Assembly: GCA_000708835.1 (NCBI GenBank)
Contig: DF237734.1
Location: 1-32,857 of the forward strand
Direction: 5' to 3'
DNA from: Klebsormidium nitens
Lineage: Eukaryota; Plantae; Klebsormidiophyceae
Length of the DNA: 32,857 nt
This document shows, one piece after another, positions 1 through 9,454 of this stretch (position 1 is its first letter; each line of letters opens with the position of its first letter). The position numbers and the translations under genes were made by a program. The notes under the pieces are model-generated. The model was given only the letters and a program-made list of their open reading frames with translations, was not told where the DNA came from and did no database searches.

Positions 1-363
1 ATGACATTAGTCCGCGCGACCCGCGCGCGTATAGCTACCGAGGGATCCCCGCGAGGGGCTCGGAAAGCTAGCGCCGTTACACCAGGAGCGATGGGAGCAA
101 ATTACCATGGACTTAATTGCAGTCCTGACTACCTGAAACCACTCGAGGAAATTCCGGCATTGCTGTTTTCGTCGACCGCTTATCGAAAGAAATAAAAATC
201 GCACCCATATCTGATGACACGACCGCCCCCGCCATCGCTCGTGTATATTTTGATAACGTATTCCGTCATAAGGGACTGTCGCGCGTGATCATTTCTGACA
301 GGGACCCTCGGTTTACTTCTAACTTTGGCGTACCCTTTTCAGGCTCCTTGGTACCAAGCTCTC

Positions 364-405
364 CACGCGCTCGGTTTGACCGTCGGTTTGGGGGTGGAAG
401 GCGGT
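364..405 (-). other. Inverted 42-bp piece of the integrase gene (TAFHPQTDGQTERV)
   Basis: Reverse complement of 364-405 is acc gcc ttc cac ccc caa acc gac ggt caa acc gag cgc gtg, the conserved gypsy integrase motif that is missing from the + strand here. Positions 364-377 and 457-470 form a perfect 14-bp inverted repeat. Confidence 0.93.
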
Positions 406-461
406 TTTAGGGTGAAAACCCTAAAACCCTAAAACCCCTAAAACCCTAAAACCATAAAACC
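405..461. repeat. Interstitial telomeric repeats (TTTTAGGG type), G-strand unit facing C-strand units
   Basis: TTTTAGGG (405-412), TG, then AAAACCCT AAAACCCT AAAACCCCT AAAACCCT AAAACCAT AAAACC (415-461). Confidence 0.9.
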
Positions 462-1223
462 GAGCGCGTGAACCGGGTCATCGAGGAAGCCCTCCGACCC
501 TACGTCAACGCCCGACACTCTGACATTGATCTATACCTAACAGCTATCGAATTTGCCTATAACAACTCGGTCCAACTCTCTACCAGCCACTCCCCCTTCT
601 ACCTCAATACCGGTCCACACCCCCTCACACCCGCCAACCTACTAAAACCACCTTCCTCCGATACACCCGCCGCCGATCAATTCCTGCACAACATCGCCTC
701 CTCCCTACAAACGCCAAAACCCTCCTTGTACTCGCCCAAAACCGCCAAAAACAGTACGCCGACCAGCGTCGCCGCCCGCTTACCTTCCAACCCGGCGACC
801 AAGTCTATCTATCCACCGCCCATCTGTCGCTCTCCACCCGCTCCCAAGTCCGCAAACTCGCACCCAGGTACACCGGGCCATTCACCGTACAACAAACCAT
901 CTCAGACGCTGCGTACAAACTCGACCTACCCGCCCACATGGCAATCCACCCCGTTTTCCACGTATCCCAGCTAAAACCCTACCATCCAAACGACCCGACC
1001 CGCTTCACCGACCGAGACCCACCACCACCTCCTCCGGTACTCACCACAGACAATCCCCAACACCCTATTGACAGTGTTGTGGACGAACGAACCGTCGGCC
1101 GCGGTACCCGGCAGCGCACCCAGTACTTAGTCACCTACCGAGACCAGCCCTTCCACGAGGCCCAATGGGTCGACGCCCACCTAGTAAATTTAAACCCCAG
1201 CAACGAGGACGTTGCTATTACTT

Positions 1224-2087: not shown

Positions 2088-5000
2088 ATGTCCCTCTCGT
2101 GTTCCCTCAAGAGCTGCTCAAGCATCCAATCCGCAGCGCCTTTGAAACCGGCAGCAAAGACGAGGCAGCAGCAGCACTCGCCATGTTCTAGCAACCCTTC
2201 CTCCCAGCGCATCACTTGCAAGCGATATCCAGGTGCTCTGCTGAGCTTGCCACTGAAGAGAGGGGCATTCTTGGGTTGTACCGTGACTCTACATAGCACT
2301 CATGATCAGCAATCCAGCATTAGATCCCCTCAGCGCGGCGTCAAGGGTCAACACAGGAAGGTACCAGCTGCCAAGCTGACACTAGAAAAAGAGACACAGA
2401 CGCAAGCAAAGCATGGGGGTGAGAAAGAGGGGCTCGAGCTGCCCCCCGGATCTCTGGGCCTGCCAATCATCGGCGAGACGCTTGAGCTCATTAGAAGTCT
2501 GAATCCTGAGAACCCCGATGCGTTCTCGGGCCCGCGGCAAGCCAAGTATGGGAGGATCTTCAAGTCAAACGCGCTCGGGCGCAACTTTATCACTGTATCG
2601 GGGCCCGAGGCTGCAGCCCAAATCTTGACAAACGGTTAGCGACTTGACAGATCAGCGACTCTCGGATCCTCATCTTGGGTTCTCCTTGCTGGTACTACAT
2701 AAAGAACAATCTGTTTTGGGGAATAGCTTCCTCTCTTGCTTCCTGGATTATTTCGCAGAGTTATTGTGGCTCATCCTAGTGGCTCCATTTTTTAAGTGGC
2801 TCATTGGCAAATTTTCAAAGATCGCTCTCCTTGATCACATTGTTTCGATCATTTACCTAGAAGGTACTTTTGTCTTGGACAAGCTTTCCCATCAAGTGCG
2901 GCAACTAATGAGACCAGTTTTATTCACAAGCTTTTTCCTCTGGTTGCAGAGAAGCTGTACGCCACTGAATGGCCACAATCATTTAAGCCCCCAATCGGCG
3001 AGCATGCGCTGTCCATGACAAACACGCTCTGATCAAATATCCATAAGAAGTATCGGTCTCAGTAAGCAGTTTCAATCTTTGCAGAGAGACTAGTTGTCAC
3101 TGAATGACTGAGATTCTTCGAGCGCCTCGTTGCCTAGCCCTCGAACTTTCAAATGAATAACCATAGTCTCCAATTCCAATGAGCGCCTTCTCATTTGCAG
3201 AGAAACTGTATGCCACTGAATGGCCGCGGTCTTTCAAGCCCCTCATCGGCGAGCATGCGCTGTCCATGACAAACGGGCCGAAGCACAAGTATCTACGCGC
3301 ACTGATAGCCAACCCCCTGAGCTTGGAGAACCTGAAAACGTACGTGCCTCTCATTGAGAGAGCGGTGCTGTCGCTCCTGGACTCTTGGCAGGAAGATACG
3401 ATTCTGAAGGCGCATCAAGAGATGAGGCGGGTAAGGGCGACAATACATACATGCTCATAGAGAGCCTAACCCTCATCTGTCACTTGCTTCATTGATATGT
3501 CAAGAGATCGTGGCGTGAGCGATTCTATAATCTCCCTGACTTTCAAGATAGCGTGGACCGGCCAGAAGCGTTTGGCTAACAAGATCTGCCCGACCCTAGA
3601 CCAGATTTCAGTGCCAAATTCTGATTTATTGTGCGCAAGATCATGCGCCATGTCATGTGTAGACGCATGGAGGTTCGTTATGTAGCAATGTAGCAATTCC
3701 TTGAATGATCACTTTCAGGCCCCAAACGCGTGTCTACGACAAGATTCTCCCGAGTAATAGTTTTAGAGTCGGCTAAAGCCAATTCCTAATCCCATGTTGT
3801 CTCACAATGCTGTGGTCTACTCTCTTCTGAATTACAGGCCCCTTCAGGGGCTCTTTCTCAACGATCTCGTCTATCCTGTGTGCAGTTGACATTCAACGTC
3901 ATCTCAGAGCTGATCTTTGGCGCAAAGCCTGGACCCCAGACGGAGCGGCTGTCGGGTCACTTTGACGTGTGGGTGCAAGGCCTGGCTGTGCTAATCCCCA
4001 TCGACCTCCCCTTCACAAAGTTCGGGAAATCTATGAAGGTGGGTTGGAATCTGGCAGAGGGCATGAGTGACAAATGACGAGATGTTTTCAAGCCCGTCGA
4101 GCCTGTTATCACTGGTTGCTGACTGCAAACAAGCTTTTGATATGCAGCGTTTGAATCTTTGCCCAGATTGCGAGGAGCTCCTTATTTTCAGTGCGCTTCT
4201 GGTCCGCTCTGTCCAGAGACCATTCGCTAGCTGGGAGCTGGTGCATGGGACCCGGATTTAAAGATCGATCAATCAATCAATTGATGATCGTAACGTCTCG
4301 TAGGGGCCAGGGGAGGCTCATGAGACAAGTAGACATGAGACAGATAGAAGCGGGACCTGCGAGGGTCGGGCCTTGCCCTTAAGCTCCGATGAAAGCCTGG
4401 AGCATCTGTCTTTATCTGCTATGGTGCGCTGTCGATCAAAGCTGCTTAAAGCGGTGATTAAGCGTCCCACCGCCAGAGGGTTATGTCTGACCCCTGCTTT
4501 AGCAGCCCCCTGACAGATGCATCAGAACATACTCGTCTCCTAACCAGATTTGGTTATTTAAACCTCACGTGTCTCGCTCAGGCACGCCGAGCCATCTTAT
4601 CCGAGGTCGCCCAGATTGTGGGCGAACGCCGCACAGCGCTGAGAAATGGCGAACCCGTCCCTAACGACATCCTAACCCGGTTGCTAACCGAAAAGGACGC
4701 GGAGGGGAGGCAGCTTACGGAGGTGGAGCTGTCGGACAACCTCCTTAACCTGCTTTTCGCAGGTACGTTTCGCAGGGAGAGTCTGGCCCTAACCGGAGTC
4801 GGTTATTGTTAGCCTGCTTTTCTAGGACATCATAACAGGGTTAGGTACGAGAATCAGACCTTTCGTTTTCACAAAGTTGAGCATGGCTCGCTTGGCTTGT
4901 CAGTACTCGAGCATGATCTTGTCGTTGTGACGTTGAACCTTTTCGCATGACGTGTGTTAAGAGCTGGAACGTATGCCATCGGACTTTTCGGCTGCGCCAA

Positions 5001-7879
5001 AAACGGTACTTTTACAGCGTCCAAGGTGGTTCGGTCTTTCAATCGTTTTACAGGCCACGACACCAGCGCGAGCAGTTTGTCCATCATCATCCACTCTCTA
5101 GGGAGCCGTCCCGACGTCCAGCAGAAGCTGCGGGTGAGCCGAGCGTTCCTCGCTCGCAACTTTTCGAGCTACCATATGTCAACGTATACCGCAGTCTCGA
5201 GCTCTTGGCTTCGAGTGCGGCTTTCCCTTGCAAATTTGCAAGGAAAGCGTCCCTTGAATCGAGAAATGAATAACAAGGAGGGTGAAGCAAGTAAAGCCAC
5301 ACATGTACGCTCAAAGAAGTCAATCATAAATTCCAGGAAACGTACGAAAATTGAGTATTGAATCGTCCGCGTGTGTCGCCAGTCTCGAGTGCCATCGCCT
5401 TCTTGGAGATTTGTACGAAGCCGTATCGGTTCCGACGGTCAGGTCATGATCAAGGCGCAATTCACCGCTTCAACTCTGGAAGCTTGCCGCCAACTTGTCT
5501 CAACAGTAAAAATATACAACGGGAGGATTCAGACAAAAGGATGGTATGCCGAACTTCTTCTTAATACTGATCACGCAGGACGAGCATGCACGCATCAGGA
5601 GCGGCAAGGCAGCCGGCGAGCCGCTGACGTGGCAGGACGTCCGCCAATTGGCGTACACGGATCAGGTGAGGGGACGTAACCATTCTGCCCGGCACGTGTA
5701 ATGTCCGCCGACATATCTGCTGACACGTCAGGCGACTGGGCGCCGGAGTTATTCTTGGGAGGGTTGTCAATATGGTATAACGAGGGAGCGCAGCGAAAGT
5801 TGGGCGAAATCTTCACTGAACCTGGCCGAGATTGTTCTCATCTTGCAACCCTGAGGGACTTTGAAACTCAGAGCGCTGAAAATTGCTTGTATGAAACGAC
5901 CCAGTATCACGGTTGTCACCTCTGCTGAGGCTGCGGGAGTTTGCTTTGTTTCTTCTTGATTTGGATCCATCTTCCGCTAAGCATTCTGCGGTATTCGCTT
6001 TCAATCTCTATCAGAGATCTTCCAAAGCCCAAAGTTGGTCTGTGCGCGAATCCTACCGAAAACCAACTGCAATCCTCCCCTTCTTTGAATGCACCGTTCG
6101 ATCGAGGGTGTGCGGTTGCAAGCCTTTTCTCTCTGTTGGTCAAATCGGGTCAGGTTGCTCCATGCACCCTCAAGCCATCTTTCAGGGCCTACGACTGCTT
6201 CGTTTATTTCCAATTGTACCAATTTCTTTTTTACATTCTATTATTGACCAGGCTCCTCATCCCTAAACTCAAATTTCACGTGAGTGTTTCTGTGGCTCCT
6301 ACAGCGCTTACCCTTTCTCAGTACAGAGTTCCTTTGGTATTGCCTTCCAAGATTTCAATACTTTTTTTATATATTTTCTTCCTTACGGCTCCTGGTTAAA
6401 GTTGGTTTCCTCTCTCTACTTGCAGGTCATCAGCGAGGGCCTGCGGCTGCGGCCAATTGTCGGGAACGCATTCAAGGTGGCCACGGAAGACACGACAATG
6501 TACGGCTACCGCGTACCCAAGGGCTGGTCCGTCAACCTAGACTACCGCGCCGTCATGTGCCGCGACTCGTACTTTCCCGAAGCGGACCAGTTCCGGCCGG
6601 AGCGGTTCGACGTGAGTGAACGGAATGAACGGGGATACGGAACCTACGATCTGCTGAGGCGACGATTTGTTCGAGTTTTTGTGCGGAAAATGTTGCCGTG
6701 GCAGCGACAGACGTTTGCACGCTCTTGTGCGCGCTCTTTTTCACCTCAATCCGATGCCAGAAGTCTAGGAAGAGTTTGCAAGTTTTCTTTCAGAATAGAG
6801 TCGAAAATTCACTCAGATCATTCTGTCAGCTTTTGAGCGTGTGCTTGGCACTTCGCACCTTTATGCTGAGGGAACTCCATGCAAGAAAGTTAGCGAAAAG
6901 ACATCCGGAAAGAATACTCGACCTATCAGCTCTGTTTTAATCGCCCTCCGCTTTACAATGCAGGAGAAGCTCAAGCCATACACGTTCCTTCCGTTTGGAA
7001 GTGGTGAGTCGTGCTGACCTGAACCGGTATTTTTTTCCTCGGGTTCTTCCTTTTAGCACCTGCAGTCTCCATCCTCTCAGACTTCGACAAGAGTTTGCCT
7101 CATGACCACAGAGGGATTGTGCGTTTGATGCCGTGTCTTTGCCTCGTTTCTTGTGGCGAAAGGAGCGGCTTGTTAGCTGCCCCGGTTTTGCTGCTCTCAA
7201 GTACGTGAATTTGCCCGACTGGATTCGATGCTGAATGATGTGCTGCAATCCACACGCGCGCTTCTCCCTGATACAGCGGGTCTTTTATCTGTCCTTGTTT
7301 CGGTGTCCAGGTGAGCGGCAGTGCCCGGGGAGCGCGCTCGCTCGGATGGAGATGACGGTCTTTCTGTACCACTTCTTGCACCTCTGGGAGTGAGTTTGCT
7401 CTTGGTTTCCGTTGCGCCACCATTTTCCTTATGCTTGCGCCACCCTTCTTTCACCTACTGCCTTTACTTAGCCTTCATTATGGCGCTACGAAACGGACTC
7501 GTTCAGATACCTCCACGAAGTTCTGAGGTGGACGATAAATTTTAATTGTCGGCTGAATGTCTGCTTAATTTGCTTACTTTATCACGCTGTTGAAATTATG
7601 GCGGATGTGAAGCGAGAAACTCTCTTACGTAGATGGCTGATTCAACAACGTGCAAGAGAACCAGGTATCTAGTTGAGTAAACAACTAATCTTTCAGGGCG
7701 ACTCGCTGCTTCTTTATTAAAGCCGCAGCGTTGATCTTTCATGATTTAAACTTTCGAGTGGCTTTCTTTCTTGCAGCTTCGAGCTCACAAATCCATCGGA
7801 GGAGACTGTCTTTGTCCCCATGGTGCGGCCGAAGGAGGGCCTGCCGCTGAAACTCCGGCGACGAGTTAACTTTCAGTGA
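2088..7879 (+). CDS. Cytochrome P450, CYP85-clan-like, 561 aa, with plastid-transit-peptide-like N-terminus
   Basis: Exons 2088-2634, 3201-3430, 3886-4038, 4582-4762, 5054-5133, 5579-5665, 6426-6611, 6964-7003, 7311-7389, 7777-7879; all GT-AG, phases consistent, 1686 nt. Motifs: LPPGSLGLPIIGET, I-helix AGHDTS, ExxR (EGLR), PERF, heme-binding FGSGERQCPG. Confidence 0.93.
2944..3023 (+). pseudogene. Truncated duplicate of the P450 exon 2 5' end, with its own acceptor, inside intron 1
   Basis: TTGCAG acceptor, then 2950-3023 matches 3201-3274 at 65/74 nt (KLYATEWPQSFKPPIGEHALSMTN vs KLYATEWPRSFKPLIGEHALSMTN). An in-frame TGA follows at 3030-3032. Confidence 0.85.
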
Positions 7880-9454
7880 CGTGGCAGCTCGACGCTCATT
7901 TTCCGGCGTGAACGGAACTTATAGGAGTAAAGCAAAGGAGGTCATATCTCATGTACCGTAGTAGCGTTGCGTTACTGTAGAGCTGTGAAGTTACCATAGT
8001 TCTCGTGGTTCACGGACTCATCTCGATAGATGGCAGAGAAGGGAACAGGTGTCTTCAAGTTGCGAGCCCTGATCAGACGTCGTCGACCTGTACAACATTC
8101 TTTCTAGAACGCACGCATACATTGTTTGATCTGGACAAAATACTGGACATATTGTCCGCGCGCCACTTGTCAGTGATCAAAAAGCTCTGTAAAGCCGCAC
8201 AGAGAAAATCATGTAAGTACGCTTTAGGAAGTAGTATATACGAGTTTGCAAAACAGCAAGCGACTTAGCAGAAGCTCTTTTGTACTGACGGAACGCTAGC
8301 TAATATAGTGATCACACATCTGAGGATGTGATGCCGACCTTATAATTTGAATTATTTGGATATTTGATTTATTCTCTTCTGAGTATGAAGCGGTGTTCAG
8401 TTACTGAGTAGCATGGACACTGAACTGTGCGGCGACTAGTCGGCTCAGCATTGTGCACGCCGTGCTGCAACTCGGGCGCCTTTCGCATGCCTTGCGCATC
8501 ATTGTTGGACTTTGCGTACGGTGAGGCCCAACCGTTGGACTAGCTTGAGCATATCATTGTATCATTCCAATACTTTGATGCCGCGGATCTGGAGTTCACG
8601 TATAGTTGTGTATACATGCCATGCAGCCAGCAGGCTGGATTGTACATGCCGCGCGTTTACAGGCGGCGCATGCACACATGCATCCCACAATTGTGACACA
8701 CGAAATAGAACGTTTCGATTGTGGCTTTTCAATATTTGCGATGAAGTGCATCATCAGAGTCATGGCATATCATCATGCACCCGGGCCACCCGCCCCATCC
8801 GACATGCAGCCTCGTGCTCAGGCCATGATCTCTAAGGGTGGGCCCCAGAGGATGCAGCCGCAGAGCGAGGAGGGGACTACTGCTTCTCAACCTTGTTGAT
8901 CCGACATGATTGTTCAACTGATTCAGTACTTACATACTCAACAATCCTCCATGCTGGCTGGGCACTCGGTGTAGACTTGCTCCACGTTGCTGGCTGTCAT
9001 TTTGGTCAAGGCCATTTGCGAATCTTCCATTGCGATAGCGAAGCGCTCTTGAAGCTTCGTACAAAAAACTTATCAAAACCGCCTCTTTAAGTGGCTACAA
9101 GCCACTTTGGAAAAACTCGTTCCTCAGATTGCTGTTTATCTCTGCCTATACGGAAAATAAACCTCGTTTTTCAATGTACAGTTGCAGTTTGACCGGTCAC
9201 AACCACAGATCTCATGTTACATCAATCGTGTGATGATCAAAGTATTCACTCTCTTACTGACTCCCCTATTAGTTCGCCCAATGCTGCACATACACAGAAG
9301 GCTTCACTAACTTGTTCGGGCTTTAAGTAGTCAGTCATGTATGCCCAAATCATGGGGCAGATTAGGCACTGCTCAAGGGGGCCACAAGCTTCACAGCAAA
9401 CTACCCTGATTGTTCAGTGCAACTCACCTGACCCTTCCGATCCACTTGCAAAGA

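Follow-up and report, generated by a model that had tools for sequence, protein, structure and literature searches.

Layout of the locus

The DNA analysed here, referred to below as the window, is a stretch of 32,857 nt (32.9 kb) from Klebsormidium nitens, contig DF237734.1, with a G+C content near 50%. Its first 1.25 kb is the 3′ part of a Ty3/gypsy element, and an intron-rich cytochrome P450 gene follows at 2088–8260 on the forward strand. Relatives of the element retrieved by protein search (loci L001–L004) are 67–79% identical to it and carry an rve core, a Tf2-type SH3 region and a chromodomain (domain matches PF00665 (rve), PF24626 and PF00385). The same loci additionally encode a Ty3 capsid, an RVT_1 reverse transcriptase and RNase H. 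The integrase is of the Ty3/gypsy chromovirus type, with an rve core that holds the …HPxTDGQTE… motif and is followed by an SH3-like region and a chromodomain; the tail of the element in the window itself gives Pfam matches to Chromo and SH3_Tf2-1, both of which are weak.

The integrase of this copy is interrupted by 107 bases (364–470) that consist of 42 inverted bases and facing short telomere repeats, and which we call the scar. The scar and its flanks comprise the following features.

87–364, forward: fragment A, the upstream integrase core (…ISDRDPRFTSNF / WRTLFRLLGTKLS); blastn to L001–L004 at 77–79% identity.
364–377, reverse: left arm, an inverted copy of segment C (AAACCGAGCGCGTG); a 14-nt inverted repeat, 100% complementary to the 14 nt at 457–470, and alignment to the relatives.
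378–405, reverse: segment B (ACCGCC…GACGGTC, codons TAFHPQTDG-Q), present as an inverted copy only; translation and alignment to intact relatives.
405–412, forward: one G-strand telomere unit, TTTTAGGG; T405 is common to this unit and to inverted segment B, and TTTAGGG occupies 406–412.
413–414, forward: T413, then the filler base G414, read from the sequence.
415–422, forward: C-strand unit 1, AAAACCCT.
423–430, forward: C-strand unit 2, AAAACCCT.
431–439, forward: C-strand unit 3, AAAACCCCT, with one extra C.
440–447, forward: C-strand unit 4, AAAACCCT.
448–455, forward: C-strand unit 5, AAAACCAT, with one substitution.
456, forward: the A that follows the C-strand units.
457–470, forward: right arm, segment C (AAACCGAGCGCGTG) in its native forward position; inverted-repeat match and alignment.
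471–1225, forward: fragment D, the remaining integrase, the SH3-like region and the chromodomain tail; blastn (457–1250), tblastn and the weak Pfam matches.

Outside the scar the copy has three frameshifts, of which two lie in fragment A (near 128 and 325, with tblastn frames 3 then 2) and one in fragment D (near 720). Fragment D ends at a stop codon at 1223–1225. There are zero in-frame stops and the residues are well conserved, which together indicate that this is, judged by its sequence, a moderately young dead copy.

Anatomy of the scar

Fragment A ends …GGT ACC AAG CTC TCC (G T K L S) at 364, exactly where its blastn match to L001–L004 stops. Read on the minus strand, 364–405 translates to TAFHPQTDGQTERV, which is the inverted integrase motif. 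C364 is common to the Ser codon and to the inverted block, leaving a 1-nt microhomology at the A/C′ junction (a prime denotes the reverse complement). The inversion of segment B gives the plus strand a 3′ end of …GGCGGT, the first telomerase-type seed. On the minus strand the C-strand tract at 415–456 is a G-strand tract primed on …CGGTTT, and bases 457–461 (AAACC) can be read either as repeat or as integrase, providing a 5-nt seed, GGTTT, on that strand. Counted from the seeds, the G-strand tract spans 405–413 and the C-strand tract 415–456, with one filler G between them and 457–461 common to repeat and integrase. After the right arm the forward integrase reads TERVNRVIEEALRPYVNARH..., with fragment D starting AACCGGGTC… at 471.

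A preliminary description of this DNA, made from the letters of the window, had reported most of this anatomy. The integrase stop at GTKLS followed by a 42-bp inverted motif, the TTTAGGG-T-G followed by five C-strand units of which two are imperfect (406–456), the geometry of G-strand facing C-strand, the 14 bp present twice (forward at 457–470 and inverted at 364–377) and the beginning of the tracts at GGT and GGTTT all hold base for base. The loss of 6 bp (TTCTCC), which that description missed, is seen by comparison with intact relatives.

The scar contains the only telomere-type run in the window, where a 16-mer pattern gives four overlapping matches against 0.01 expected. No other telomere words in a tandem run and no comparable hairpins occur in the 32.9 kb, and tandem telomere units are absent from 52 kb of related loci. 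As single-stranded DNA, the 126 nt at 355–480 are predicted to fold into one long hairpin (−35.6 kcal/mol, z = −6.9) in which inverted segment B pairs with the C-strand units.

Identity of the repeat

Two lines of evidence support the identification of the scar repeat as the telomere unit of the organism. First, TTTTAGGG is the published telomere repeat of the Klebsormidiophyceae and of some Chlamydomonadales (PMC3622300). Second, the repeat is greatly over-represented in reads of the source organism, for which depths were taken from Logan contigs of four public runs (two studies): words (31-mers) from CCCTAAAA runs reach a summed depth of ~4 × 10^3 to 1.7 × 10^5, compared with ~5–20 for single-copy sequence such as the copy-specific contigs beside the scar. 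This thousands-fold excess implies tens of kb of telomere array in three of the four runs, and the array exits into different unique sequences in many contigs. The insert repeat is identical to the species’ own unit both by read depth and by publication, as the preliminary description had presumed.

Sequence before the proposed break

The reference for the pre-break state is made up of natural intact relatives and same-organism family copies, that is, paralogous sequences taken individually, with no consensus built. Between the two blastn blocks that correspond to window positions 87–364 and 457–1250, the relatives keep exactly 34 unmatched nt. These are TTCTCC (codons F-S) and the 28-nt segment B, after which come the 14-nt segment C and then D. 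Alignment to intact relatives, which the preliminary description had named as the way to establish the pre-break sequence, fixes the order before the event as A-TTCTCC-B-C-D, with a length of 28 bp for B and 14 bp for C. The order now is A-C′B′-(TTTTAGGG)1-T-G-(AAAACCCT)5-C-D. On balance, 6 bases (TTCTCC) are gone relative to the relatives, 28 bases are present only in inverted form and 14 bases are duplicated (inverted and direct).

L001–L004 and the same-organism copies, all of them paralogous references, have no repeats at this point. Reads of the source organism also show multi-copy members of the family in which B-C-D is contiguous, with the same bases and no repeats. The evidence for these intact copies comprises a loose end, CCCCAAACCGACGGTC, before 457 in X1 and an opposite-strand joint 365>470 in X4 with 41 letters on the island side and a depth of ~110. 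As for an orthologous empty site, the related-species loci L005 and L006 are without the element upstream of the P450 gene.

The reading frame provides a separate view of the same event. By tblastn the integrase reads in frame 2 as far as 364, then in frame 3 starting at 456. The scar swaps 34 nt for 92 nt, a net gain of 58 nt or +1 frame, which matches the frame shift seen. Because the frame shift equals the net length of the scar and the flanks are collinear, the locus is best described as one element copy with a local lesion.

Telomere-like seeds at the junctions

The G-tract on the plus strand starts after …GGCGGT and that on the minus strand after …CGCTCGGTTT, and both tracts continue their seeds (GGT and GGTTT) in the correct register of the 8-nt repeat. 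To gauge how often such seeds arise, each window position outside the scar was taken as a mock 3′ end. A G-strand match of at least 3 nt is found at 9.5% of mock ends and one of at least 5 nt at 0.65%, giving a joint chance of ~6 × 10^−4 for both seeds in what is a post hoc test. The integrase motif DNA (CCCCCAAACCGACGGTCAAACC) resembles the telomere C-strand, a likeness that would favour telomerase priming at this place. The surrounding DNA is also unusually telomere-like, and this agrees with the idea that telomerase finds a favourable substrate in the conserved integrase motif when it is written in the codons used here.

A model for the origin of the scar

Our judgement leans slightly towards the scar being a local double-strand-break repair site in a single chromosomal copy of a retrotransposon of the Ty3/gypsy (chromovirus) type, where short telomerase extension was followed by rejoining. 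We infer telomerase catalysis from the register of the tracts and from their seeds; a similar picture would result if another polymerase had copied telomeric DNA or RNA. A point against the repair explanation is that, of the five C-strand units, two are imperfect, one of them (ATGG for AGGG) being the first to have been synthesised.

The polarity of the primed ends constrains any such model. The left primed end is C′B′-3′, which is the bottom strand of the right-hand fragment and not of fragment A. The right primed end, also on the bottom strand, is C′-3′ and differs from the left one by 28 nt of trimming. The left primed end is thus the right flank in inverted form, the two primed ends agree in polarity and both derive from one side of the break, so that repeat addition must have been preceded by an inversion, by a fold-back or by a sister-type step. 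The preliminary description had proposed that two broken ends were extended with telomeric repeats and rejoined. Its notion of telomere-assisted repair is supported, but the two ends, being of the same polarity, are not the two sides of one break, and we reject healing of both sides of a single break for the same reason. Fragment A abuts the far side of the inverted block through 1 nt of homology, with a loss of 6 bp, and the facing tracts meet head to head across a single filler base.

In the repair model the 42-bp B-C stretch beside the break would have been turned round. Telomerase would then have extended both 3′ ends at the open junction, by ~1 repeat on one end and ~5.5 repeats on the other. 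The resulting tracts, too short for capping, would have been filled in and joined by non-homologous end joining.

At least three routes to the inversion fit this one example. In route (a), the DNA would have broken at two places separated by ~48 bp, and fill-in of a 14-nt stagger at the right-hand break would have duplicated segment C; the small fragment would have been religated to A in inverted orientation, and the …GGT and …GGTTT ends would have been extended and joined. In route (b), a hairpin or fold-back at the right end would have produced a short palindrome, C′B′|BC, the centre of which broke again, with one side resected to C before both ends were extended and joined. In route (c), the broken chromosome would have been replicated and each sister end healed abortively and independently before the sisters fused; a further break, 42 bp away from the axis, would then have been joined to A. 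We rank routes (a) and (b) above (c), because (c) would have to pass through a dicentric or acentric intermediate and depends on great luck in the placing of the second break. All three routes would share a core in which telomere addition to two 3′ ends was abortive and the ends were then joined across a single filler base.

The preliminary description had also held that the event knocked out the integrase catalytic core. The catalytic-core motif is indeed disrupted, but with three other frameshifts in the copy the timing of the scar as the knockout event is not supported. The consequence at this single locus is small: one further inactivating lesion in an already frameshifted retrotransposon copy.

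Read support and alternative explanations

We think it unlikely that the scar is an assembly or library artefact, in which a read chimera, or a mis-join close to a contig end, brought together telomere-bearing pieces of one repeat family and the chromosome is without this structure. The scar begins just 364 nt into the window, whose first base may be a contig end. Fragment A, B-C, fragment D and the telomere words are all multi-copy in the reads, and among the Logan contigs listed for the four runs none crosses the junctions at 364, 405, 414 and 456. In X3 and X4, bins 217–324 are uncovered. The 2014 K. flaccidum/nitens draft, if it is the source, is a 454 and Illumina Newbler assembly in 1,814 scaffolds, with a published size of 104 Mb (PMC4052687). 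Exact-pattern scans of metagenome contigs found neither the B′/repeat junction nor a copy-specific 30-mer beside the scar, and exact-protein look-ups of five window ORFs, including two short ones that cross the scar, found none on record.

Against an artefact, a repeat-driven mis-join needs shared sequence, and the junctions have only 0–5 nt in common. Fragment A, the inverted island and fragment D all derive from one copy, within 100 bp, and are frame-coherent, a coincidence that would be very unlikely for unrelated pieces. Both repeat junctions fall on telomere-like seeds, which is not expected of a random chimera. Furthermore, contigs at single-copy depth run from 463, 476 or 485 to 683 and match 463–683 exactly.

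Two other observations were made on the read contigs. Three runs of the same sample contain, at single-copy depth, a joint 364>547 with 30 letters on its shorter side; it cannot share k-mers with the exact 463–683 contig and is therefore probably from a paralogous copy of the element. In run X5 (second study), 18 of the 25 listed differences from the window in 556–1000 are G>A, which suggests that the library is of the bisulfite type or that a methylated or paralogous copy underwent deamination with a strand bias.

Template-switching repair typically leaves templated and inverted inserts. A real scar could, improbably in our estimation, have formed without telomerase, through copying of telomeric DNA or telomeric transcripts by a repair polymerase (of the MMBIR/FoSTeS or polymerase-theta type) or through end joining that captured stray telomeric fragments, in either case by microhomology and together with a templated inverted 42-bp insert. 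The 3-nt and 5-nt overlaps at the tract starts suit microhomology annealing equally well, and the imperfect units were possibly copied from degenerate proximal telomere repeats. There is, however, direct precedent for telomerase-linked insertion at breaks (PMC2246262). Formation without telomerase also requires two separate captures in opposite orientations. Each tract stands in seed-extension register, and the tracts are as short as abortive healing would leave them.

Reverse transcriptases often switch templates at microhomologies. An origin before integration, in which reverse transcriptase switched templates by snap-back and onto telomeric RNA and the scarred copy was then integrated, would agree with the position of the scar inside the element and with the otherwise coherent frame on both sides. 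It would nevertheless require three switches and telomeric RNA in the particle, and no further copies with the scar were found either in the metagenome contigs scanned for the junction pattern or in the 32.9-kb window. We regard this origin as very improbable.

Least credible of all is the insertion into the integrase of a mobile element of fold-back or MITE-like kind that has a telomere-like core. The perfect 14-nt terminal inverted arms and the predicted 126-nt hairpin are what such an element would have, but alignment to the relatives largely refutes it by showing that the arms are the target’s own sequence (C is native integrase and B′ the displaced neighbouring 28 bp). Copy-specific arms of this kind are expected of a repair process and not of a transposon. 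A target-site duplication is absent (363/364 versus 470/471), 34 bp of the target are missing from the forward orientation, the window has no second copy, and metagenome contigs scanned for the junction word gave no match.

Three further readings are rejected. The end-to-end fusion of chromosomes raised in the preliminary description fails because a single collinear integrase copy supplies both flanks and its frame shift matches the net +58 nt. A true chromosome terminus is inconsistent with the assembled sequence, in which another 414 nt derived from the element lie past the C-strand run and the array has only five units. Microsatellite growth from the telomere-like words of the element would not yield the exact 8-mer in both orientations.

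Relation to known systems

Head-to-head telomere fusions are represented by the human 2q13 chromosome fusion and by the sister-chromatid fusions of critically short telomeres. The scar resembles them in having (G-strand)n facing (C-strand)m with little filler and in the unequal loss of sequence from the partners. Both of its arms come from the same side of the chromosome, as in sister-type fusions. Unlike these fusions, the scar has tracts of one and five units, its flanks are one collinear copy and not two subtelomeres, and its left arm extends for only 42 bp before normal upstream sequence resumes, so that no chromosome-scale fusion survives.

With de novo telomere addition the scar shares tracts that start at GGT and GGTTT seeds in register and telomere-like surroundings. 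Such addition consists of a terminal truncation and a full telomere, whereas the scar would represent abortive addition with the ends rejoined internally. Fold-back or P-nucleotide-like footprints likewise place a short inverted copy beside a break with a joint of 0–1 nt of homology. The inverted stretch of the scar is longer (42 bp), the forward copy of segment B is missing and telomere repeats lie on the axis.

The interstitial telomeric sequences of Nergadze et al. are similar to the scar in comprising few, exact units at an internal site, in the deletion or duplication of flanks and in the inferred role of telomerase. They differ in being unidirectional, whereas the scar, instead of a single unidirectional tract, has two facing tracts (405–413 on the plus strand and 415–461 on the minus strand) together with a 42-bp inversion. 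The scar is moreover from a streptophyte alga, has an 8-nt unit and shows no flank derived from telomerase RNA of the kind present in rodent TERC-ITSs. In mammals, telomeric repeats are inserted at break-repair sites with flanks deleted, added to or duplicated, some of these events having been deduced from the consensus of a repeat element (PMC2246262), and break-repair telomeric inserts of primates and rodents also feature in two other papers (PMC7215372, PMC8537989). In Chlamydomonas telomerase mutants, which have the same 8-nt repeat, new telomeres, interstitial tracts with microhomology and subtelomeric inverted fusions are reported (10.1101/2023.01.23.525193); a compact internal structure of facing tracts is not described in that preprint.

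Telomere inserts at internal break sites are documented mainly in vertebrates and are one-directional, and the scar lies in a streptophyte alga near the ancestry of land plants. What it adds to the known principle is the presence of repeats on two ends of the same polarity and the accompanying local inversion. The multi-copy nature of the host element means that the pre-break state is known to the base, which is rare for evolutionary repair scars.

Tentatively, and with more doubt than confidence, we propose that telomerase routinely joins in internal break repair in Klebsormidium, in which case facing repeats with a local inverted duplication would be a genome-wide signature. If so, this copy would be a key instance, as the known family sequence gives the exact state before and after the event: the choice of seeds, the 6-bp loss, the 42-bp inversion, the 14-bp duplication and the 1-nt filler. 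Such a signature would be a natural record of abortive healing versus end joining in a desiccation-tolerant alga, and structures of this kind should then not be annotated as transposons.

Other features of the window

The 3′ end of the element has further recognizable parts. A polypurine-like tract (AAGGGGGGG) lies at 1224–1238 after the stop of the chromodomain ORF, and read contigs from other contexts start at 1238 (TGTAAC…), where the 3′ LTR probably begins. A near-perfect palindrome of 16+16 nt is located at 1380–1411 inside this probable LTR. On the coding strand of the element, more words that resemble the telomere C-strand are found at 642–649 (CTAAAACC), 716–723 (AAAACCCT) and 971–981 (CTAAAACCCTA), so the bottom strand offers several further potential telomerase seeds.

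The beginning of the window (1–86) stands apart in the reads of the source organism. Its first ~80–110 bases have a depth of ~10^3–7 × 10^3, far above the ~5–500 of the rest of the element outside telomere-repeat bins, and A41G is present in every contig that covers 1–86. Positions 56–127 still align to the family integrase at the protein level (tblastn of P0003). The region 1–86 belongs either to a far more abundant integrase subfamily or to another very high-copy repeat.

The first exon of the P450 gene encodes …GLELPPGSLGLPIIGETLE…, and loci related to the gene have a Pfam p450 match. The gene is syntenic, exon by exon, with L005 (JGI sample) and L006 (Logan run SRR23617307) at 72–93% identity. 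One exon start, with its 3′ splice-site context (…tgcag/AGAA[AG]CTGTA…), occurs twice, at 2945–3023 and 3193–3271, ~250 bp apart, and both copies align to L005 4298–4379 at ~83%. The upstream copy runs into a stop, and the repeat consequently looks like a young tandem partial-exon duplicate.
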